This document shows positions 1 through 13,750 of a stretch of DNA of 13,750 nucleotides, in pieces. Made by a program: the position numbers and the translations under genes. Source of the stretch: Octopus sinensis (lineage: Eukaryota). The notes below the pieces were generated by a model, which was not told the DNA's origin, ran no database searches, and saw only the letters and a program-made list of their open reading frames with translations. Every line of letters begins with the position of its first letter. Within the stretch, counting starts at the first letter, position 1. Location: contig NW_021826060.1 of NCBI RefSeq assembly GCF_006345805.1, positions 1 to 13,750 of the forward strand, in the 5' to 3' direction.

Positions 1-14
1 TTTGGTCTAACCTT

Positions 15-532
15 ACTCTCTCTCTTTACTCTTTTACATGTTTCAGTCATTTGACTGCGGCCATGCTGGAGCACTAGTTTCTGGGTATTTGCCCCTTATG
101 AATGCAGAGCAGCCGAATCCGCAGGCCATCACTATATTCTGGACTGTCATATAGCTTGGAGATAACTCTCTCTCTTTTACTTTTTTACTTGTTTAGTCAT
201 TTGACTGCGGCCATGCTGGAACACTAGTTTTTGGGTATTTGCCCCTTATGAATGCAGAGCAGCCGAATCCAGCAGGCCGTCGCTATATTTCTGGACTGTC
301 ATATTAGCTTGAGATAACTCTCTCTCTTTTCTCTTTTACTTGTTTCAGTCATTTGACTGCGGCCATGCTGGAGCACTAGTTTCTTTCTGGGTATTTGCCC
401 CTTATGAATGCTGAGCACCGAATCCAGCAGGCGGTCGCTATATTTCTGGACTGTCATATTAGCTTGGAGATAACTCTCTCTCTTTTACTCTTTACTTGTT
501 TCAGTCATTTGACTGCGGCCATGCTTGAGCAC
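15..532. repeat. Chimeric tandem repeat, about 3.4 units of 150-156 bp (SINE 3' tail fragment plus a 95-100 bp foreign module)
   Basis: Units start at about 15, 165, 317 and 473. Each is ACTCTCTCT..CAGTCATTTGACTGCGGCCATGCTGGAGCAC followed by TAGTTT..GGGTATTTGCCCCTTATGAATGC..GGAGATA. The fourth SINE-tail copy continues into the intact SINE body. Confidence 0.92.
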
Positions 533-856
533 CGCCTTTAGTCGAGCAAATCGACCCCCGGAACTTATTCTTTGTAAGCCCAGTACTTACTCTATCGGTC
601 TCTTTGCCGAACCCTAGGTGACAGGGACATAAACACACCAGCATCGGTTGTCAAGCAATGCTAGGGGGACAAACACACACACACCCACATATATAATATA
701 TATACATATATACGACAGGCTTCTTTCAGTTTCCGTCTACCAATTTCATCACTCACAAGGCATTGGTTGGCCCGGGGCTATAGCAGAAGACACTTGCCCA
801 AGATGCCACGCAGTGGGACTGAACCTGGAACCATGTGGTGGTGTAGCAAGCTACTT
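473..856 (-). mobile_element. tRNA-derived SINE family 1, body and 3' part (head interrupted by the Tx1 element)
   Basis: Reverse complement is colinear with the intact copy at 12371-12776: box B GGTTCAGTCCC, GCATCTTGGGCAAGTGTC, internal (TA)/(TG) tract, tail GGCGGTGCTCAAGCATGGCCGCAGTCAAATGACTGAAACAAG. Confidence 0.9.
844..856. repeat. Left target-site duplication TAGCAAGCTACTT of the Tx1 element
   Basis: Identical 13-mer at 3738-3750. Confidence 0.92.
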
Positions 857-1014
857 TATTTCATATAATTTGCCATTTAGGCATTTACAAAGAGGGGACA
901 AACAGGACAGACACATATAAAGGGTGTGAAGTAGCTTAACACAGTTAAAATTTCGAATGAAATTACGGATAAGATTATAAACAATGAATTTTACGAAGAC
1001 AATGTTTAAAAATA

Positions 1015-1896
1015 TTACTTAATGATCATGTCGAAGGACAGACACCCAGCCATCTGGGTAGAACCTTTACTTTTTGATCCGGTCACACTTACCTGGTGCC
1101 AAACATACCCAGCTTGCATGCCACAGGCTTCCATCTTTTCACAAACATCTCGTGACAGACACCTCTTCTCCAGCCTGATTTTGCTACTGACCATTCTTGA
1201 CCTACACTTGACCATTCTATGGTCAGTATAGGGCGCCTGGACGAGCTGTGGACAACTAAAACTAGACTTATCTCTAGTACTTATCACTATCCTGTCTAGA
1301 TAAGACTTGAACCTTCCGTCGCCACTCATCCAGGTCCAATCTGGGATGTTCGGATGGTCAAGTCTGTAACGATCTGCTAGCTGAAACCGCTTAAGCAGAT
1401 CCACGAGACGTGAGATCACTTTCCTATGGATCGAGCCAACGCTATCGATGTGTACGTCAACGATAGCATTAAAGTCCCCTAATACCACTAAAGTCTTCGA
1501 CGTCACGAGAAAGCCCTCTAGGCGCCGATAAAAATCAGTTTGGAAACTTCTAGCACAAGGTGCATAGAGTCCGATCAACCTGAAGGCCTTACTGCTGTAT
1601 GTCACATCAAGGACGACCAGCCCACTTTCTGGGTCCACATAGACTGTACTTGTCTGCAGAGCCAAGTCTTTACGGATCAGTACCACTACACCCGCTCGCC
1701 TTCCGGTCTGGCGAGGAGACATGATTTTCTCGTAGCCATTCAGGAGAGGCGAGAAGGTTTGTAGGCTGTCCAGCTTGGTCTCTGTAGCAACCATCACGTG
1801 TATATCATGTGATCTGAGGTCGTCGAGGAAACAAGCCTGCTTCCACTTCGAACTCAGACCACGCACATTTAAACAACCAAGGTTAAGAGAAGCCAT
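1015..1896 (-). pseudogene. ORF2 remnant: APE-type endonuclease (1896 to about 1207) fused to the ORF2 C-terminal tip
   Basis: Motifs LNVRG, ATETK, GLYAP, LGDFN, WTW, SYLDRI, YTDH are the exonuclease-endonuclease-phosphatase signature of L1/Tx1 ORF2. No RT motifs follow. Confidence 0.9.
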
Positions 1897-1913
1897 TACA
1901 AAAAGTAAAAGTT

Positions 1914-3305
1914 CTACTTACATTTCGTTGAAGAGGTTGGGGCCGACCTCACCACACATTTTTGGGCCCCTTCTTTCTCCTCCTTCTTCAGATAGTCCGA
2001 CAAGTTCGCGATACGCCGGATGGCCTTTGGGTGTCTGTCTTTTAATTGTTTGAACACTATTTCCGCAATCCACGCACATCTTTCATTTCGATCTTTGTGT
2101 TTGTTGTACAGTCTTGCTGTTTAATGCGGAACCACAATATCGTTTATATATTTGTTTTGTGTATCATATTCAATTAATATGAGTTCATTTTTTTGTCTTC
2201 TTTTTCTAGGCCAGTTGGGCGGGATTTTTTTTTTTTGGTGTCTGTGGTGTGTCTTATTATTTTTTGTAGGGGATGTGGACGGGGATGATGCACGAGTTCT
2301 TTTACGAACTGTTGTAAATCCTCCCCCTCCTCCTGATACCTCCATGGTATCATCTGGGGTTGCAATATTTTGTTCAGTGGGCGCCGCAGTTTTTGTAGGG
2401 GATTGTGTGTGCAAGGGTTGGGTTTTTTTGTCAGTTTGTTTTGGGGTTGGCACCGTAACAGCAGGAGTGGGACTTTTTGTTTTTGTGGGGGTAGGTGAGT
2501 TTGCAAGAGTAGGGATTTTTTAATTATCTGAGGGGCCTGTTGTCTGCGGTTTCTTTTGCTTGTCTGGACAGTCTACATGAATGTGGCCCTTTTTGCCGCA
2601 GGCGTAACAGGTGGATTTTTTCCCTTCGACCTGTACCCTGAGGGCTACATTCTCGCCCACGAGCACCCTCTCAGGAAGGACCTGCAGGTCCTCCTGTGTT
2701 CCTTGAATTATTACATTAATGTCTCACCCAAGCCAATATTGAGGGGCAGAGCATGTTACCTGTAATATTCTAATTTTGTCTGTCCTTTTATATAACAGGG
2801 CGGCCACTACCTCTACAGGATCTACTTCCGGCGGTGCTTCTGCAATCCTGACCCGGGACGTCCTGCGTCCCCTATAGGTTGGCAGAAGTACCATCTCCTT
2901 GGTTTTTAGGGGATTCACAGAATGCCCGCGGGCCACCTCCTCCCCCGAGAAGCGGACCTCCACAGTGCCATATGTCCGTCTCCTGGCGACGTACACAATG
3001 TCCTTCCAAATCGGGGACAGGCATTTCTCGATAGTATTCTTTTCAAAGTGTTTGAACCTTCTGCTTTGTGGACAGAAGGTTTTAAACACTACGGTCCGCT
3101 TCTCGGTCTCCAAGATACTGGCGGAGGGTGATATTTTAACATCACCACCCTCCTCTTTCATTCTTTTAAATAGCTTGACGAGCTGATTGACATTGATGTC
3201 AAAGTTCTCGGTTGCCACTGCGGCTACCGCCGAAAATCTTTTACTACAGTTATCAACATTGCTCTCCTCAAGAGCACTATTTTCGTGAATAATCTCAACA
3301 GACAT
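1914..3305 (-). pseudogene. ORF1 (Gag-like nucleic-acid-binding protein with CCHC zinc knuckle), one reading frame with three internal stops
   Basis: ATG at 3305. The track ORFs 2724..3335 and 2121..2453 are in the same frame. Manual translation gives CYACGKKGHIHVDC at 2609-2568. Internal stops at 2724-2726 (TGA), 2520-2522 (TAA), 2121-2123 (TAA); terminal TAG at 1914-1916. Confidence 0.8.
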
Positions 3306-3737
3306 TATTCTGTTGAAATTAGTAATAGACAACACAAAAATTACAAATATTGGTTTCCCACAAAACTGGGAAACCTATAAAAAGTTTTTCTTCCAAAGCA
3401 ATTCAATGAGTGGTAGAAAGCAGTTCAAAAATTGAGTTTAATTCCCACCCCCATTCGGGGGAGGGGCACGAAATTAGTCTGGCAAGACTTTATACAGTCA
3501 CGTAGATAAAAAAGCCACAATGGCTAACAGTTCAACAGTAACAAATTATCCAATTATTCCCCGGTAAACCGGGGAATAGACAGTTCAACAACGTTCAAAA
3601 CAATTTTCAGTAGTAAAATTCAACAAAATTCCAGATGGTACGAAGTAAAGATTAACAACACAGCAAAACTCTTACCGGGAAGAAAACGCGTCCAAACCGT
3701 AGTAAGGTAAGCAAAGTCACTCTTCAGTCAGTGAGGT

Positions 3738-3772
3738 TAGCAAGCTACTTACCACACAGCCACTCCTGCGCC
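3738..3772 (-). mobile_element. 5' head (box A part) of the SINE family 1 copy split by the Tx1 element; includes the right TSD
   Basis: Reverse complement GGCGCAGGAGTGGCTGTGTGGTAAGTAGCTTGCTA matches the start of the intact copy at 12371. Confidence 0.92.
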
Positions 3773-4237
3773 TTCTTCATTTTTTCTTTACTTCCTTAAC
3801 ATACACCGAACTACTCTCTCTGAATGTATTTGGATTTTGTTTTTTATAAACCGTAAGGCAGAAACTCGAGTAACTGTACGTAATTTTCATGCCCCAACAC
3901 AAACACAGGCAACTATATTATCGGGGATAATCATAGATGAATACATCAAAATTAAGTAGTATAATTTAGTTAATCTCAGCGGGGTAAATTGTAAATTGAG
4001 CGTCCACAATAATTAAAATGTTAGTGAATGCTATAAATTAAACAAATACGAATTCAAACATTTGCCAAAGTTACATAAATACAATCTCATCATCAAAAAG
4101 AAAAACACATATGTTTTGGCTGTAAAGTATATGCATGTGTATATGTCAGAGGGTAAGTGTGTAGTAAATATTCTATAATTTCTCTATATGTTAAATCGGC
4201 GTAGAATTTCTCCTATTGCAGTAATTCACATATTCGT

Positions 4238-4251
4238 TATATATATATATG

Positions 4252-4320
<69 letters not shown>
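4238..4320. repeat. (TA)n/(TG)n compound microsatellite
   Basis: Direct reading. Confidence 0.95.
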
Positions 4321-4321
<1 letters not shown>

Positions 4322-4517
4322 CTGTCCCTTTAGTCAATACTTTATTTTTATACTTTTCATATTTTCCTTCTTTCCTTGTTTTTCTGTGTACCTTCTCGTA
4401 GAAGAGCGTAGGCTCGAAACGTAAAAGACTTTTTCTATTCCTGAGCGTTATACTAATACACCTGTTTGTTTTGTACACCACTTGTCTTCGTCTTTTGTTT
4501 TTTTCGTAAACTTTCCC
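4321..4517 (+). mobile_element. Short Penelope-like terminal-repeat-type element with a degenerate hammerhead motif
   Basis: GAAGAGC-GTAG-GCTCGAAACGTA at 4401-4423. Downstream TTCCTGAGCGT is shared with the element at 10393-10615. Flanked by microsatellites. Confidence 0.6.
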
Positions 4518-4548
<31 letters not shown>

Positions 4549-4625
4549 CTAGTTAGCTAAATAGATAGATATAGAGATAGAGAGAGAGAGAGAGGGAGAG
4601 AGGGGGGGGAGAGGGAGAGAGAGAA
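4518..4625. repeat. (TA)n and (GA)n/purine-rich microsatellites
   Basis: Direct reading. Confidence 0.9.
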
Positions 4626-4964
4626 ATATAGTACCCACCTTTACAAAAAATGTATGCATTGGAGACAATTTATTTCACTATTAAAAAGTTCATGTCTCAA
4701 CATGGCTGCAGTCTAATGACTAAAATAGGTAGAAGATGAAAGATACACATCATATGTAGGTATATCTGTATGAAGTATGTATGTATACATGTACGCATGT
4801 ATGTATCTATGCATGTATGCATGTATGTATGCATTATGGGAGGGCAGTGTATGCCACGAAAGTGACATAGGGGTAAAAATATGCAAATACCCGTCTGATA
4901 AGTGTACACCAGGCACATTCATCACAACCATATGTGCGCAACACGGTGATTTAATATCAAGACA

Positions 4965-5358
4965 AACAGACACTGACCTTGCAGGTGGGGCCCAGTTAGA
5001 ATTTTCTTCTGGTCGAGTAGCCCACCCTGCCCAAAAGGTCCCTGAATAAGAGTTGTTTGAGGATGTTGAACGAAACACCCACGTTTCCAAAGGTGAATTA
5101 TCCAAACCCCAAAGAATACCTCTCAACACATGGCTATGATGCTCCCCAAGTACTTCTGCTCGTGATCAGACATGTACATATCGTCAGCCACTAAGGGACA
5201 TGCTCAATTGGTTAAGGTCAAGCAAATGACAAGCAAATCTGTGGCATTGAGCAGAATATTTGTAGCAGCCCATCTTTTAAATCAAGACAAAATAATTTAC
5301 ATGATAGCACTTTCAATCAGTTACGGTCAGAAGCCATCACAGCCACTGCCTGGTACTT
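4965..5358. mobile_element. Unclassified interspersed repeat (resembles an abundant octopus repeat)
   Basis: Higher-GC block between AT-rich tracts, recognised from memory only; class and boundaries uncertain. Confidence 0.45.
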
Positions 5359-5359
5359 C

Positions 5360-5524
5360 ATGTATGTATGTATGTATGTATGTATGTATGTATGTATGTA
5401 TGTATGTATGTATGTATATATGCATGCATGTAGTGTATATATATGTATGTGTATGTATTATGATACACATACGCAGACATGTATACGCATACGTATAAGC
5501 ATATGTATATATATATATACACAA

Positions 5525-5568
<44 letters not shown>

Positions 5569-5712
5569 ATATAATATATATATATATATATAACATACAT
5601 ATATATGTATATATATATATAATATATACATATATATATATACACACACACATATATAGATTAACTACACATATATATATGTATATATATATGTTATATA
5701 TATATATATATA
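5360..5712. repeat. (TATG)n followed by degenerate (TA)n microsatellite
   Basis: Direct reading; explains the YI/MYV/IHTY pseudo-ORFs. Confidence 0.95.
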
Positions 5713-6055
5713 TTGTTTATTTCGGAATGTCCATATTGCCAGTTTAGCCATAAAACACACGCACTAATATTTGGCTGTTATTTGCTTCAGTGATATTTTA
5801 TTTTTTACATCAATCTTAATCTTATTTCGGCCAAAGTTCTTTCGTCACACTCCTGTGACCGCATCAGTGGTCCTTTGTTTTCTCCACTTACTTTTTCTCT
5901 CCTTACTACCGTCAGCTGAAGCAAAATAACACCAAATACCTAGTGCGTGTGTTTTTATTGGCTAAACTGGCAATATGACCATTCCGAAATATAACAATAT
6001 CTGTTTCAACACACGACTTCACATAAAAAGTCTTCACAACAAATATTTAAACGTA
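5711..6055. mobile_element. Inverted-repeat element (arms of about 80 bp) with a central hammerhead-like motif, embedded in (TA)n
   Basis: 5713-5790 is the reverse complement of 5916-5997 (TTCGGAATG..CATATTGCCAGTTTAGCCA..ACACACGCACTA..GCTTCAG). Hammerhead-like motif at 5831-5870, minus strand. Confidence 0.8.
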
Positions 6056-6106
6056 TATATAATATATATTATATAATATATATAATATATATATATATAT
6101 ATAATA

Positions 6107-6156
<50 letters not shown>

Positions 6157-6253
6157 AATATATCTCTATATATATATATACACATATATACCATCTATCT
6201 ATTCTCTATAACAACAACACCAATAATAATATAATAATAATAATAATAATAAT
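6055..6253. repeat. (TA)n and (AAT)n microsatellites
   Basis: Direct reading; the (AAT)n abuts the 3' end of the second LINE. Confidence 0.9.
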
Positions 6254-6257
6254 ACAT

Positions 6258-8950
6258 AATTTCATTTATTTGCCACAAGGCGAAGGATGATGGAAACACT
6301 ACAGAGACTCGACATAAAGTATCGGGTTTTGCATATAATAATGAAATGATAAAAAAGAAACATTAATTATACACTGAAAAAGAAGGGACATATGCATAAC
6401 TTGCAAAGGTATGGCAGGGATGATCATAGAGATGTGACCTCTAGGGATATTCGAGAAACCCCACTGTTCGAGATTACCCCGAAACCCGAAGAGTGAGTGT
6501 CTTCTGTCCGACTCACAGGTCTATACGTATGGAGGTACCATCCACTCTTGCCATTCTCGCAACTTCCACACACCTGTCAATAAAGTCACTCGAGGACAGC
6601 ACTTCCCTCTCCACTATCAATTTCCATATCAAGTGAAACTTGAAAAAGACAATGAGAGCTCTACCAAAGAGGAATGTATCTGCCTTTCAGCCATGTCATC
6701 AAACAACCTCTTTCGCCACAGGCACCAGGCAAAGGAAAACTTCCTTGCCAGCCCAACTGAAGAAGGGCGGCGGTGCGATCATCCCTACAGACTCGGCCGA
6801 CAGACAGATCCGGCCTACACGTGACAGCAGTTGTTCAACATAACCCCACAAGTCACCAATGTTCGGACACTGAACGATGGCATTCAGAATGGTTCCGTCA
6901 TTCTGTGCATACCTCGGACAAGTCCGTCTGACAGCACATCCGTGCCTGTAGGGTTTCTCTCGAACGGAAAGCGATCCCCACCTCTTAGTACTGCCAGGCC
7001 AAGCGCATCTGGAAATTAGCCATGGTAGTTCCCGCCCGGAAAGTCCTCCGGAACAGACTAGCCAGTTCGTTTTCGTCGGCGCCCAGAGTTTCCCCCAGAA
7101 TGTCCTTGCATTTCTCCGCTACTAATCCTCTATAAATTTCTAACGTCGAACATCCACCGATCCCATTGCCTGACTGGTAGAGATTTGTGAGCACCTGAAG
7201 ACATTATAGGTGCCAGGCGCCCAGTCTCTGTCTTTTCTTCACCCAGGACTACAGCTCCGACCATTGGAACGCGTCCCTTTCACAAGAATTGAAGTAAGAG
7301 ACGCTCCAATCTGGTCAAGCAGTACCTGAACAAGGCACGACGGTCAGGCGATAAATGATAACGGAGGTGATGTAAGCATTCGCCACCTCTGCCTGACCTT
7401 TCAGGGACAGCTTTCTTTCAGCCTATTTCTGGGTAAGACTGACCCCCCCCCCTTCGCCACCTCATCCCAGTTCTTATCAACCTGGAGGTCAGGACCAACC
7501 AGACCCCAAGTACTTTAACTGGTCCGTCGGTCAAGCGTCCGATGGCACTGTCCTGCCTCTCCAGGAGCTCAAGGGCAAAGCAACCGATTTGTCTCCGTTG
7601 ATTTTAGCCTCTATAGCCCACTAATATTCCCTCAGGATGGTGCCGACCGTCTCCACTTCGGAGGCGTCCGACATCATGACTGTTATGCTGACACTGCTCT
7701 ACCTTGTCCTAGTTTTAAAGGGATGCCCCTTAGCTGTTCCAACTTCCACAACATTTGCTCGATTGCCAATACGTATAGAAGAGGTGATAAGGAGCAGCCT
7801 TGATGGAGTGAGCGCGCGAATCCAAATAGCTCTGATAGGTGGCCGTTTACTTTGGCCACTGCACAGGTGTCACTGACCATTGCAGAAACCCAGCCTCTGA
7901 AACGGGTCCGAAACCGTCTGCATTCAGGGTAGCTGCCAAGTAACGATGTTCAACCCTATCGAATGCTTTTGATTGATCCAAATGCATCAGAGCACCCACG
8001 AAGCCAGCTCTGGTCCCAGCCATTTCTATGATGTATTGCATAAGGTAGCGGTTGTCGCGGATAGACCTGATCGGGATTCCGCACGTTTGCGCTTCTCCAA
8101 CCAAGATACCGACGACAAACGCTAACATTTTCATAACACCCTGGCCAAAATCTTAAATTGTTTTTAGCAGAGTTATGGGCCGAAAATTCTCTAGTACGTT
8201 CCCATTGTCACCGTCCTTCCTCAGCAGTGTTACCACCCCTCTGCTAACAGCACTAAGCATTCTTCCATTTTGTTGCCCGTTACAGTAGACGTCTGCCAAG
8301 ATATTGTCAAACAAATCTGGCATGAATACATAGAATTCTTTGGGTAGACCATACAAACAGGATGATCTGCGATTTCTGCAATCGCTTATCGGCTCCCAAA
8401 TTTCAGCGGCTGTTATTGGCATTTCACATTACCTCGCGTCAGCTGCGCTAATCGTCAGCTCACGCCAGCTACTCTAATCATATTCTTCATGGCGGCCCAC
8501 CACCGGTTGTTGATGATTGCCTCCGTCAAATGCTGCTTAACTAGTTCACTAATCCGGTCCTTGTAATCTTCGCTAACAGGAAAGAGCGCCTTTAACTTCC
8601 ATTAACCAAGTCCCTGTCTACGAGTTGTATCTAACTCGACTGTGCAGATCAAAAACTCATGGTCTGTGTAACTGACCAATTTGAATTGTGAACAACCTAC
8701 ACTATCCCTATTCTCTGACCTAACAAATACTCTATTTAGATACTGTCTGGATGACCCATTGTGAGTGCTCCATGTCCATACTGGTACATCAAGGAAATCC
8801 AGTCGATACCTATCAGACAAATGGAATTCTGAGTAGGTTTCCGAGGCTTTTGCACACTCTTCTGTGTACTAGCCCCGCACAGTTCTTCTATGTCTCTAAA
8901 ATCTCATTCTAGTCCCCCACTAGTACTAAACTGTGAGACGTTCCCAGAAT
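6258..8950 (-). mobile_element. Second Tx1/L1-clade retrotransposon, 5'-truncated inside the endonuclease and decayed
   Basis: Minus-strand fragments in the expected order: LVLVGD, DRYRLD, WTW, YTDH, FRPITLL, LDQSKAFDRV, QGCSLSPLLY, AKIN, degenerate CCHC, stop TGA at 6513-6515, 3'UTR of about 250 nt ending GGCAAATAAATGAAAT. Confidence 0.9.
6513..8950 (-). pseudogene. ORF2 pseudogene (partial endonuclease, reverse transcriptase, C-terminal zinc-finger region)
   Basis: Many stops, frameshifts and internal deletions. YADD is absent at 7684-7687. CPRY..N..VQC at 6920-6867 is a mutated CCHC. Confidence 0.88.
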
Positions 8951-8974
8951 AGTTATATATATATATATATATAT

Positions 8975-9389
8975 GACAGGCGTCTTTCACTTTCTGTCTA
9001 CCAAATCCACTCACAAGGCTTTGGCCGGCCCGAGGCTATACTAGAAGATACCTATTTCTTTATTACCCTCAAGGGGCTAAACACAGAGGGGACAAACAAG
9101 GACAGACATAGGTATTAAGTCGATTGCATCGACCTCAGTGCGTAACTGGTACTTAATTTATCGATCTCGAAAGGATTAAAGTCAAAGTCGACCACGGCGG
9201 AATTTGAACTCACAACGTAACGCAGACGAAATACCGCTAAGCATTTCGCCCGGCGTGCTAACGTTTCTGCCAGCTCGCCGCCTATACTAGAAGATACCGG
9301 CCCAAGGTGACACGCAATTGAACTGAACGCGAAACCATGTGGTTGGGTGGGACGCAAGCTTCTTACCATAAAGCCACTTCCGCCGCGCC
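8975..9389 (-). mobile_element. SINE family 1, 5' half, interrupted by a family 2 SINE
   Basis: 8975-9052 and 9282-9389 are colinear with the reverse complement of 12371-12530. Confidence 0.85.
9053..9281 (-). mobile_element. tRNA-derived SINE family 2, full length, 17-bp TSD CTATACTAGAAGATACC (9036-9052 and 9282-9298)
   Basis: Box A-like TGGCAGAAACGTTAG, box B GAGTTCAAATTCC, central CCTTTCGAGATCGATAAATTAAGTACCAG, 3' end AATAAAGAAATA, exact 17-bp direct repeats. Confidence 0.9.
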
Positions 9390-9394
9390 TACAC

Positions 9395-9431
9395 ATACAT
9401 ATATATATATATAGTATTTATATATATAATC

Positions 9432-9465
<34 letters not shown>

Positions 9466-9600
9466 CTATATATATATATAATACATATAAAAGTATATAT
9501 ATATATATATGTATGTATTTATATTGACAGAGTTTTGCACATACCTACAGGACCTACATGTAACTACATCTGATTCCCACAATATATATATATATATATA
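9395..9600. repeat. Degenerate (TA)n microsatellites
   Basis: Direct reading. Confidence 0.85.
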
Positions 9601-10129
9601 CGTACTTTGGTAACACACATATTCACACACGCAGATATACGCAGTCACACACATTATACATGATACCTTATACACAAATAAACTACTTATCTTCCTGATT
9701 ATGTGTCAGCCCGTGTATGGAAACGCGTGTAAGAAATTACGATAAGTTATGTGGATGTGTCTTCATATATCAGTTGCAATGTAGGCAATATGTACGTGAC
9801 ATTGTGACGGAATTTTCTGGGAAATAGATCTTGGCAGAATCAAAATTACATCGGAGAAGTATACAGTGAAATATAGCTAACATAAGATATGTGTAGGATG
9901 ACGGGTGCTAGCATTGGTAGAAAATGATATAAAAATTTATGAGTGTTTGCTTGAGGCTAAGAGTAATGCTAAAACTTGCAATAGTCGTTATTATGACTCT
10001 AGCGAGTATGGTGTTATTGCAGTCTGTAATGCTAATGTTCTTTAAACATGGTGCAGCTCCAATCAAACAAGTACAGAGAAAATAATGTGTCCACTTATGG
10101 CCATCAAGTCATTTTCTATCATTGACGAT

Positions 10130-10270
10130 GGCTTGGCAGAGTAATTAAGAGGTTTGATTTGTAAACACTTGAATTGGGGATCAGTTCCACTGCACAACTT
10201 TTTGGGCAAGAATTATCTATTATAACCCAGTGTTGACAAAATACTTTGTGAACTATGTGAAAGTCCGTCA
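10130..10270 (+). mobile_element. Old, diverged SINE family 1 head
   Basis: GGGATCAGTTCCACTGC, TTGGGCAAG, CTATTATAACC, TTGTGA and AAAGTCCGTC occur in the same order as in 12371-12530. Confidence 0.55.
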
Positions 10271-10271
10271 T

Positions 10272-10272
10272 A

Positions 10273-10314
<42 letters not shown>

Positions 10315-10357
10315 ATCTATATATCTATATATAGATATCTATATATTATATATATAT

Positions 10358-10392
<35 letters not shown>
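10272..10392. repeat. (CT)n and (TA)n microsatellites
   Basis: Direct reading. Confidence 0.92.
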
Positions 10393-10393
<1 letters not shown>

Positions 10394-10615
10394 AGATATA
10401 GTTATCCAAACAAAAAACACAGAAAAAAAGAGAAAAAAAAGAAAAAACACAGCAACGCAGGACGTGGAAACTTAAAGTATTATTGACGCTCAGGAAAGAA
10501 GGGAAGGAGGGTTTAACGTTTCGAGCGGAGCTCTTCGTCGGAAACAAGGAGAAGGAAAGATCCCAAGGAGGGAAGACAGAGGAGAAAATATTTGAGCTGG
10601 TGGTGCTCAAGAGAT
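10393..10615 (-). mobile_element. Short Penelope-like terminal-repeat-type element carrying a minimal hammerhead motif
   Basis: Motif at 10511-10545 plus downstream TTCCTGAGCGT shared with 4321-4517; flanked by microsatellites. Confidence 0.65.
10511..10545 (-). ncRNA. Candidate minimal type I hammerhead ribozyme
   Basis: GUUU CCGACGA A GAGC-UCC-GCUC GAA ACGU U / AAAC: stem I 4 bp, stem II 4 bp, palindromic stem III, GUU cleavage triplet. Confidence 0.6.
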
Positions 10616-10628
10616 GTGTGTGTATGTA

Positions 10629-10968
10629 TATATTACGGAGATGTACTTGCATAGCAAGTGATCTGATCTGAGATCGTGTGCTGGAACGAAAACAATTGCA
10701 GCATGGAAGGTGTTTATATAGCCATTTAAGAAACACACAAAAACCGTTAGATTCACTTCAACATTTAAATTTAATTTGTCAAAATATTTTCGTCACTTTG
10801 AGACCGCGACCTGTTTGCTGACAGCACAAAGTTTTGTCAGTGAACAGGTAGCGCGGTCTCAAAGCGACGAAAATATTTTGACAAATAAATTTAAATGTGT
10901 GTTGAAGTGAATCTATCGGTTTTTGTGTGTTTCTTAAATGGCTTATAAACATAGTCCACGCTGCAATT
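10629..10968. mobile_element. Palindromic element (near-perfect fold-back 10694-10968) made of two head-to-head hammerhead-like units
   Basis: 10694-10823 is the reverse complement of 10835-10968 with few mismatches; flanked by TA-rich tracts. Confidence 0.85.
10833..10885 (+). ncRNA. Candidate hammerhead ribozyme with G3/C8 swapped core
   Basis: UUUGUCA GUGAACA G GU(AG)CGC-GGUCUCAAA-GCGAC GAA AAUAUU U / UGACAAA: 7-bp stem I, palindromic AAUAUU stem III. Confidence 0.5.
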
Positions 10969-10973
10969 ATATA

Positions 10974-11043
<70 letters not shown>

Positions 11044-11050
11044 TATCTAT
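10969..11050. repeat. (TA)n microsatellite
   Basis: Direct reading. Confidence 0.95.
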
Positions 11051-11180
11051 TTATATACATACAAATAATATGCGTGGCTTAGAAATTTAACAACCTGAAT
11101 GCAAATTTATAGACGACACTAGAGTGACAGACGGTGCTAAGTTGTACTAACATTGCTGGAAATAAGAGTCAAAACAACTC

Positions 11181-12252
11181 AATACCCACAGAAGTAGTCT
11201 TATAATGACTGACAAGGGGAGGCAAGCTCCCAAACGGACATAGCCAGATCACCGCTGATTTCGAATTTTGATGCCGTGCCTCTTAATTCTCGTCGGTGGC
11301 TCTTACCGCCTAGGGTTAAACTCAACTCTCCTTGCCAACTTAAAAGGACACCGAGTTCAGACCTAGGCGCAGTAAAAGCCAACGGTGAGTCCAAATTTCT
11401 CCGAAGTCGATTTACCTTTTATCCTTTCGAAGTCGATTAAATAAGTACCAGCTGGACGTTGAGATCAGTGTAATCGGTTACTCTCATCTTCCTAAAATTG
11501 TGTATATACAAGAAAGAATTATTATAATCTATAGACATATTGATATTTCTAAGTCTCTCTAAATGAGACTACGGCAGCGGTACTGGATATTTATAGTTAT
11601 CGCCTAGCTAATATGGCAGTCCAGAAATATAGGACGAATGCTGCCGTTGATTAGCTCCAAGAGGCCATCGCCTCTAGCTAGCTATGTGACACACGAACCT
11701 GTGTCCATTATAACCTTCGAACAGGGGAGGTCAGCCGCTTCCCCTTGGTGGTCAGGCATCTGCAGACTAGTTTCAGGGTATTTGCCCCTTATGAATGCAG
11801 AGCAGCCGAATCCAGCAGGCGTCGCTATATTTCTGGACTGTCATATTAGCTTGGCGATAACTATAAATATTCAGTACCGCTGCCGTAGTCGCCTTTAGAG
11901 AAACTTAGAAATATCAATATGTCTATAGATTATAATAATTCTTTCTTGTATATACACAATTTTGGAAAGATGAGAGTACCCGATTACACTGATCCCGACG
12001 TCCAGCTGGTACTTATTTAATCGACTTCGGAGAAATTTGGACTCACCGTTGGCATTTACTGCGCCTAGGGCTGAACTCGGTGTCCTTTTAAGTTGGCAAG
12101 GAGAGTTGAGTTTAACCCTCGGCGGGATAAGAGCCACCGACGAGAATTAAGAGGCACGGCATCAAAATTCGAAATCAGCGGTGATCTGGCTATGTCCGTT
12201 GGGGAGCTTGCCTCCCCTTGTCAGTCATTATAAGACTACTTCTGTGGGTATT
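11181..12252. repeat. Long inverted repeat (arms about 11181-11632 and 11825-12252, spacer about 190 bp); fold-back or MITE-like
   Basis: Arms are reverse complements from AATACCCACAGAAG to CCAGAAATATAG; ends read TA-CCCACAG...CTGTGGG-TA. Confidence 0.92.
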
Positions 12253-12370
12253 AATATGTCTATAGGTTATAATAATTCTTTCTTGTATATACACAATTTT
12301 GAGAAGCTAATTTGAGAGTAGCTAATATTAGCTTGGAGATAACTATTAATAATTATTATAAACATTTATA

Positions 12371-12776
12371 GGCGTAGGAGTGGCTGTGTGGTAAGTAGCT
12401 TGTTTACCAACCACATGGTTCCGGGTTCAGTCCCACTGCGTGGCACCTTGGTCAAGTGTCTTCTACTATAGCCTCGGGCCGACCAAAGCCTTGTGAGTGG
12501 ATTTGGTAGACGGAAACATAAGAAGCCCGTCGTATATATATATATATATATATATATTTAGGCGTGTGTGTGTTTGTGTGTCTGCGTTTGTCCCCCTAGC
12601 ATTGCTTGACAACCGATGCTGGTGTGTTTATGTCCCCGTTACTTAGCGGTTCGGCAAAAGAGACCGATTGAATAAGTACTGGGCTTACAATAGAATAAGT
12701 TCCCGTGGTCGGGTTGCTCGATTAAAGGCGGTGCTCCAGCATGGCCGCAGTCAAAAGACTGAAACAAGTAAAAGAA
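12371..12776 (+). mobile_element. tRNA-derived SINE family 1, intact copy
   Basis: Box A-like TGGCTGTGTGG, box B GGTTCAGTCCC, CORE-like CACCTTGGTCAAGT, internal (TA)/(TG) tract, tail ending GAAACAAGTAAAAGA. Confidence 0.9.
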
Positions 12777-12914
12777 TTATTGTTTTAATTGCTCCGTAAT
12801 ATAGGGTTAGAACTGACGCATCGATCTTAAGCAGTTAAAAAAAGATAAAGGTTGCAATGGTACGTGAAACGATGTTGTCGATGACGGTGATCATTCACAT
12901 AACAGTAGTGGCAT

Positions 12915-13307
12915 GGTGGAAGCACTCCGTCGGTTACGACGGCGAGGGTTCCAGTTGATCCGAATTAACGGAACAGCTGCTCGTGAAATTAACGTTAAAG
13001 TGTATGTGGTGAGCACTCCACAGACACGCGCACCCTTAAGTAGTTCTCGGGGATATTCAGCGTGACACAGAGAGTGACAAGGCCGGCCCCTTGAAATACA
13101 GGTACAACAGAAACAGGAAGTAGAGTGAGAGAAAGTTGTGGTGAAAGAGGTGAAAGAGAAGCAGGGATCACCACCATCCCCTGCCGGAGCCTCGTGGAGC
13201 TGTTAGGGGTTTTCGCTCAATAAACACTCACAACGCCCGGTCTGGGAATCGAAACCGCGATCCTATGACCGCGAGTCCGCTGCCCTAAACAGGGCCATTG
13301 CGCCTCC
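12915..13307 (-). mobile_element. tRNA-derived SINE family 3, full length, 13-bp TSD ACAGTAGTGGCAT (12902-12914 and 13308-13320)
   Basis: Head GGAGGCGCAATGGCCCTGTTTAGGGCAGCGGACTCGCGGTC..GGTTTCGATTCCC with box A and box B; exact flanking direct repeats. Confidence 0.88.
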
Positions 13308-13634
13308 ACAGTAGTGGCATAACTGGCAAAGGTAATACTGGTACTGCTGGACTGTACCTTCATGTGTTTAATAAGATCTATGATGAAATACAGCGACAGA
13401 AAGGGAATGGACTGCGAGAACAAATGAAATTGTATAGCTTGATATAAGTAGAGATTTAGTAAACGGAGATTGGGGGAATAAGTATGAAAAGCAGCAGAGA
13501 TAGGGAGTCAGTATTAAGTATAGTTTTATTTGAAAATCGAAAAATGAAATACAGTAAAATAGAGAGCTCGTTAAATACGGAAGTCGTAACAAAATGCTCA
13601 GACCTAATGTAGTCGGTATTCTCCATATATGTGC

Positions 13635-13699
<65 letters not shown>

Positions 13700-13704
13700 A
13701 TCTA

Positions 13705-13737
<33 letters not shown>
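13635..13737. repeat. (TATC)n microsatellite
   Basis: Direct reading. Confidence 0.97.
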
Positions 13738-13750
13738 GTATGATGACGAA

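Follow-up and report, generated by a model that had tools for sequence, protein, structure and literature searches.

A 3' tail common to an octopus SINE and site-specific L1/Tx1-type LINEs suggests a partner group for SINE mobilisation

Copies of one very abundant SINE family of Octopus sinensis, here called SINE family 2, end in a tail of about 62 nt that is, by the alignments reported below, homologous at the consensus level to the 3' UTR ends of two LINE families of L1/Tx1 type. We consider it probable that this tail derives from a group of target-specific L1/Tx1-type LINEs and that the SINE is mobilised in trans by stringent recognition of it, with another family of the same group probably acting as the helper. 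Octopus genomes consist in large part of SINEs, and the literature searched yielded neither an octopus SINE/LINE tail pair nor a named LINE partner for octopus SINEs.

Results

Elements of the window

All elements relevant to tail sharing lie on the minus strand of the window, the 13,750-nt stretch of O. sinensis DNA analysed here (contig NW_021826060.1, positions 1-13,750; Table 1). The window copy of LINE family 1 has a 5' UTR, ORF1 and the endonuclease but no RT: at ~1190/1191 the endonuclease region passes directly into the last 334 bp of the element. Only these last 334 bp (857-1190) are common to 29 other genomic copies, and because the other copies run upstream into the C-terminus of ORF2, the window copy is internally deleted. 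Past the deletion joint, the 293-aa endonuclease ORF enters the 3' region in a frame that is closed early in most full copies; a frame check found only 15 open codons in this frame in 15 of 29 sampled copies. Deletion patterns different from that of the window copy were seen in LINE family 1 copies at three sampled loci (L015, L024 and L006).

The window copy of SINE family 2 is inserted in a second copy of SINE1, the name given here to another SINE, the one that hosts the LINE family 1 insertions. Genomic copies of SINE family 2 are 93-96% identical to the window copy. A B-box-like motif is present in the SINE family 2 head; ARAGORN and Rfam gave no tRNA in the window, and their searches for RNA families and tRNAs returned nothing there beyond microsatellite noise.

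Table 1. Positions of the elements and tails in the window and, in the last two rows, at sampled genomic loci.
Feature	Position	Strand	Description
LINE family 1 copy (element 1)	857..3737	-	L1/Tx1-like, internally deleted
LINE family 1 tail	857..927	-	24-mer less one T (891-913), hairpin 871-883, then AATTATATGAAATA
Endonuclease ORF, 293 aa	1015..1896	-	APE-type domain of ORF2; Pfam Exo_endo_phos, 2e-12
ORF1 of LINE family 1, one internal stop	2568..3335	-	CCHC zinc knuckle CYACGKKGHIHVDC at 2568-2609
13-bp TSD of LINE family 1, AAGTAGCTTGCTA	844..856 (3' side) and 3738-3750	-	Inside the tRNA-like head of a SINE1 copy
LINE family 2 copy (element 2), degraded RT	6259..8945	-	5' limit approximate; (ATT)n-type microsatellite after tail
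LINE family 2 tail	6259..6328	-	Diverged 24-mer region, hairpin 6272-6281, then AAATAAATGAAAT
SINE family 2 copy, 229 bp	9053..9281	-	tRNA-like head, B-box-like GAGTTCAAATTCCGCC, core, ~62-nt LINE-type tail
SINE family 2 tail common with the LINEs	9053..9114	-	24-mer 9085-9108, hairpin 9065-9077, then AATAAAGAAATA
17-bp TSD of SINE family 2 copy, GGTATCTTCTAGTATAG	9036..9052 (3' side) and 9282-9298	-	
SINE family 2 arrays	L090:1760-2530, L048, L041, L055, C22		Some end in a unit with a different tail
Sister SINE tail	L090:2440-2530, L075:640-900, L085:1040-1140 and 17 other places		

A 3' tail common to SINE family 2 and two LINE families

A first-pass annotation of this DNA, made from the sequence alone, had pointed to a near-identical 24-mer in the SINE and in element 1, and the match was confirmed in every detail. 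The LINE sequence TGTCTGTCCTGTTTGTCCCCTCT and the SINE sequence TGTCTGTCCTTGTTTGTCCCCTCT agree at 23 of 24 positions with one 1-nt gap, 34 and 32 nt from the respective 3' ends (857 and 9053). The termini were likewise as described, with element 1 and the SINE ending in GAAATA directly at their TSDs of 13 and 17 bp and element 2 ending in GAAAT at 6259, and none of the three carries poly(A). For an ungapped 24-mer with up to 3 mismatches, the expected number of occurrences in shuffles of the window was 0.00.

The same annotation would have given up its proposal had the 24-mer proved absent from the LINE consensus, as a SINE fragment picked up by a single copy. This is not the case: each of 30 genomic copies sampled from LINE family 1 contains it, as do all sampled copies of SINE family 2. 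The majority form in LINE family 1 is TGTCTGTCCTTGTTTGTCCCCTCT itself, identical to the SINE at 24 of 24 positions, the window LINE copy having lost one T. The last 70 nt are identical in 24 of the 30 LINE family 1 copies, and the last 158 nt of element 1 recur in the genome at 96% identity.

The similarity extends over the whole tail. Over the last 62 nt, the SINE matched LINE family 1 at 47-48 of 64-65 aligned positions and LINE family 2 at 45-49 of 65-66, while the two LINE families matched each other at 43 of 66; SINE-LINE identity was 69-74%, and for each of the three pairs none of 2000 shuffles scored as high. Since the SINE is as close to the LINEs as these are to each other, its tail belongs to one tail family and copies neither LINE. 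By these comparisons, homology between the SINE tail and the ends of the LINE 3' UTRs holds at the consensus level, and the 24-mer, the termini, the lack of poly(A), the TSDs and the hairpins described below are features of the families rather than accidents of the window copies. The tail has four parts, namely a pyrimidine-rich 24-mer, a GC hairpin, an AAUAAA-like stretch and a GAAAU(A) end without poly(A). A profile scan of 290 kb of loci found more lineages with the same layout; one query for another tail-bearing family (L019:265-420) gave matches confined to an unrelated upstream repeat.

The SINE and LINE family 1 are alike in terminus and in the kind of TSD, which measures 10-22 bp in SINE copies other than that of the window. 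The 3' end of LINE family 1 differs from its majority sequence by a median of 1.2%, and SINE family 2 by a median of 3.0%, with the window copy at 3.0% from the majority of 39 sampled copies; both families look young, in samples that consist of best-matching copies and are hence biased in that direction.

A hairpin near the 3' end

The first-pass annotation had also described a small hairpin in each tail, and the three are present as TGCC-TAAAT-GGCA in element 1, GCC-TTGT-GGC in element 2 and GCCC-CTTGA-GGGT in the SINE (positions in Table 1). The family form of the second is GCC-CTTGT-GGC. At the family level, the stems are UGCC/GGCA in LINE family 1, GCC/GGC in LINE family 2 and GCCC/GGGC or GGGU in SINE subfamilies; other tail lineages have GGCC/GGCC and AGGC/GCCU, the latter repeated in many copies of a sister SINE tail. 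The loop has 5 nt and is mostly CUUGU-like, and the distance between hairpin and end is 12-14 nt in the three families of the window and 10-13 nt in the other lineages.

In an alignment of 15 tails, which stand for perhaps five independent lineages and from which the hairpin itself had been read off, 84.7% of cells at the four proposed pairs were standard pairs. Column shuffles gave 66.6 ± 3.7%, none of 500 reaching the observed value, and no more than 44% of cells paired once the partner was slid. Three of the four pairs change on both sides, and the position and the CTTGT-like loop are kept, in a stem of 3-4 bp and some five lineages. Folding energies of whole tails were no better than those of shuffles (z from +0.8 to -1.3). 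On these alignments, the hairpin is plausible. The kept place and the covarying stem letters speak for the structure-recognising machinery of the annotation, the shortness of the stem and the folding energies against it, so that such recognition is an inference.

The LINEs are of L1 type

The solved structures closest to the endonuclease ORF are L1 endonucleases (3e-12). Another LINE family 1 copy has an intact 475-aa ORF2 C-terminus (L022:3-1427), which matches the RT/thumb region of human L1 ORF2p (1.6e-8) and Pfam zf-RVT (2e-9), and neither the endonuclease nor the RT region of LINE family 1 matched the structures of R1, TRAS or R2. For both regions, human L1 ORF2p was the best match. A protein search gave 58 matches without clade names, the best of them in the octopod Argonauta hians, and the ESM Atlas returned generic RVT/zf-RVT clusters only. 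Judged by their domains (APE endonuclease, RT/thumb, zf-RVT and a CCHC ORF1), the LINEs belong to the L1 superfamily. The label Tx1 fits them on the basis of L1-type domains together with target specificity, rather than of an RT tree. Published annotations name L1-Tx1 as one of the LINE groups with recent activity in Octopus vulgaris (PMC13282606) and as one of the coleoid LINEs (PMC8967140).

SINE family 2 and the window LINE families use different insertion sites

All 30 sampled copies of LINE family 1 are directly followed by AAGTAG..., and 27 of 29 are joined, in the same orientation, to one and the same nucleotide of SINE1 (GTGTGGT/AAGTAGC, the slash marking the junction; loci L002-L030). 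Identity to a reference copy ranges over 75-91% among the host SINE1 copies, whose far flanks are unrelated, so the insertions are independent. Genome-wide, the LINE family 1/SINE1 junction was counted 454 times and the LINE family 1 tail next to GGTAT 0 times. LINE family 1 is strictly site-specific, which fits the hallmark of Tx1. The head of a SINE, in which LINE family 1 sits, is an unusual target for a Tx1-like element.

Almost all of 30 sampled LINE family 2 copies are followed by a trinucleotide microsatellite-like sequence, (ATT)n, (CAT)n or (CTT)n. The (ATT)n flank could be the target, a microsatellite of the sort that Kibi and Koshi use, or a terminal repeat that belongs to the element; the sister SINE tail, with its end ...GGATTATT(ATT)n, is compatible with both.

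The SINE follows another rule. About 55 of its 3' junctions in the loci are mostly GAAATA/GGTAT, and since the TSDs of 10-22 bp begin with GGTA(T), the GGTAT motif belongs to the target. About one third of the junctions adjoin GGTATTTCGTCTG, which is position 47 of SINE family 2 itself. Genome-wide, 62,882 junctions of the SINE tail with GGTAT were counted and 2 of the SINE tail with the LINE family 1 site. The insertion-site preference of SINE family 2 therefore differs from that of both window LINE families, and the paired counts (454 vs 0 and 62,882 vs 2) tie each RNA to its own site.

SINE arrays and exchangeable tails

SINE family 2 also occurs in head-to-tail arrays of the form [1-231][47-231]n, joined at GAAATA/GGTATTTCG without internal TSDs, which suggests that they arose by template switching or from multimeric master copies, primed at the ...ATACC 3' end of the cDNA. 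A sister SINE with the same head and core carries another Tx1-like tail, whose hairpin is AGGC-CTTGT-GCCT (20 matches) and which ends in GGATTATT followed by (ATT)n. The flank goes with the tail, GAAATA with GGTAT and GGATTATT with (ATT)n, and the tails appear to have been swapped as modules between SINE subfamilies.

Other repeats of the window

SINE1 contains, just past a (TA)n/(TG)n tract, the internal stretch TGTGTCTG(C/T)GTTTGTCCCCC (window 12560-12590 and 661-690; L016, L041, L043, L067 and L087), which is weakly like the Tx1-type tail in its first half (nhmmer E 0.1-0.7); the likeness could be what is left of an older tail, or chance. Positions 1-530 of the window hold three tandem units of ~160 bp, each consisting of a SINE1 end and the stretch ctagtttctgggtatttgcccc..., which recurs once at 11760-11860. 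Two large inverted repeats were found at 10690-10950 and 11190-12260. There is a near-perfect palindrome around 10820, with arms of ~125 bp and a weak match to Rfam mir-5882, and the second inverted repeat has arms of ~500 bp flanking 11740-11860. Both inverted repeats look like foldback or MITE-type elements.

Discussion

The first-pass annotation had gone on to propose that a stringent Tx1 machinery mobilises this SINE. This is supported in part. Tail homology, L1-type domains and site specificity speak for a partnership at the level of the LINE group; the two LINE families of the window use other sites, and for them it is not supported. For this reason, the direct helper would probably be a third family of the group. 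Searches for a LINE with a SINE-like tail and a GGTAT site found none, and a GGCA-type tail, with the hairpin arm of LINE families 1 and 2, had a single match next to GGTAT. A search for SINE-type tails at GGTAT with non-SINE sequence upstream, by a filter that passes about 4 in 10 LINE families, gave 256 matches that were mostly internally deleted SINE copies; the sole recurrent non-SINE upstream sequence among them came from two neighbouring loci on one contig.

In the mechanism that we propose, the ORF2p of a LINE from this group would bind the tail on the SINE RNA, and target-primed reverse transcription would start at the nick, leaving TSDs of 10-22 bp. Read-through flank in the RNA would probably aid annealing to the nicked site. 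The SINE lands at GGTAT sites, position 47 of its own family included. That a protein recognises the tail, what part the hairpin plays and which family is the helper are matters that we infer.

LINE family 1 could itself be the helper if its endonuclease were permissive and the sites were set by the annealing of read-through flank (GGUAU or SINE1 sequence, respectively) to the nicked target. The identity of its 24-mer to that of the SINE, the GAAATA end of both and the youth of both families agree with this, and the arrays without internal TSDs suggest priming at ...ATACC and so that annealing matters. We nevertheless regard it as unlikely, because the junction counts separate the two almost completely (no LINE family 1 junction at GGTAT against 454 at its own site, and 2 SINE junctions at the LINE site against 62,882), because the hairpin and the distal tail of LINE family 1 are unlike those of the SINE, and because the endonuclease of Tx1L has been reported to be sequence-specific (as cited in PMC4494074).

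It is similarly improbable, in our estimation, that the tail is only a relic of an old Tx1-type partnership and that an unrelated LINE, or relaxed recognition, now accounts for the copying of the SINE. The search for an exact partner came back empty and SINE subfamilies of this genome swap tails, as such a history would allow; however, the youngest SINE subfamily retains the entire tail, terminus and hairpin, the SINE has neither poly(A) nor another terminal repeat, its TSDs of 10-22 bp resemble the 13 bp of LINE family 1 as expected of a shared type of endonuclease, and the type of tail goes with the type of flank. Chance similarity, or a SINE fragment picked up by a single LINE copy, has nothing in its favour beyond the shortness of the match in the window, and we reject both as exceedingly improbable given the shuffle tests (0.00 expected occurrences; tails above 2000 of 2000 shuffles) and the 24-mer in 30 of 30 LINE copies.

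Our preferred reading, mobilisation by an L1/Tx1-type group, has a close parallel in crocodilians, where SINEU elements are inferred to be mobilised by target-specific Tx1-Mar LINEs of the Tx1 clade (Kojima 2015, PMC4494074). As in the octopus, another abundant transposon is the target of the LINEs there, and the LINE family that serves a SINE differs from one SINE family to the next. The link between Tx1-Mar and SINEU consists of a common target (Mariner-N4_AMi) and snRNA-derived 5' heads, whereas in the octopus it consists of the ~62-nt 3' tail; moreover, the octopus SINE head is tRNA-like and the two window LINE families do not use the SINE's target. Target-specific LINEs of the Tx1 clade such as Tx1L, Keno, Kibi and Koshi (Kojima and Fujiwara 2004, as summarised in PMC4494074) are likewise related to L1, have an APE endonuclease and use as their target either a single site within a multicopy sequence or microsatellites. 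LINE family 1, a putative member of the clade, differs from them in that it inserts into a SINE, in the tRNA-like head.

Stringent SINE/LINE pairs of the L1 clade have been described in maize and sorghum and in Chlamydomonas (Ohshima 2012, PMC3472496; PMC3747384). These too have a specific 3' end common to SINE and LINE, and their stem-loop, in which the stems vary with compensatory changes and the loop letters are kept, is similar to the candidate hairpin of the octopus tail. Poly(A) repeats form the end of the Chlamydomonas pair and of most L1-clade LINEs in plants (PMC3472496), whereas the octopus elements are without poly(A), belong to an animal host and involve target-specific LINEs. As a working model for the octopus SINE, we use the eel pair UnaL2/UnaSINE1, in which the LINE RT recognises a conserved 3' tail common to the SINE (Kajikawa and Okada 2002, as cited in PMC4494074 and PMC3747384); by analogy with it, trans-mobilisation in the octopus may depend on the tail. 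UnaL2, as presented in these citing papers, is an L2-clade element whose end consists of short tandem repeats for slippage; a terminal tandem repeat is absent from SINE family 2 and from LINE family 1.

The finding of a non-poly(A) tail common with L1/Tx1-type LINEs nominates a partner group for octopus SINEs. It would add an animal case to the stringent 3'-end recognition within the L1 group, so far seen in plants and a green alga. The junction counts separate the sites of the SINE from those of the two LINE families that share its tail, and the 24-mer, the hairpin and the GAAAUA end are candidate RNA elements within the tail. A further and more tentative reading, possible though in our judgement the less probable side of the question, is that the 3' tail acts as an exchangeable address label, each Tx1-type tail tying one head and core to a different site-specific LINE machinery and landing site, with GAAATA tails at GGTAT and SINE position 47 and GGATTATT tails at (ATT)n. 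If this were true, the SINE expansion of octopods, with more than 60,000 copies for the GAAATA-type tail alone, would be the work of site-specific L1/Tx1 LINEs that normally have few copies themselves.
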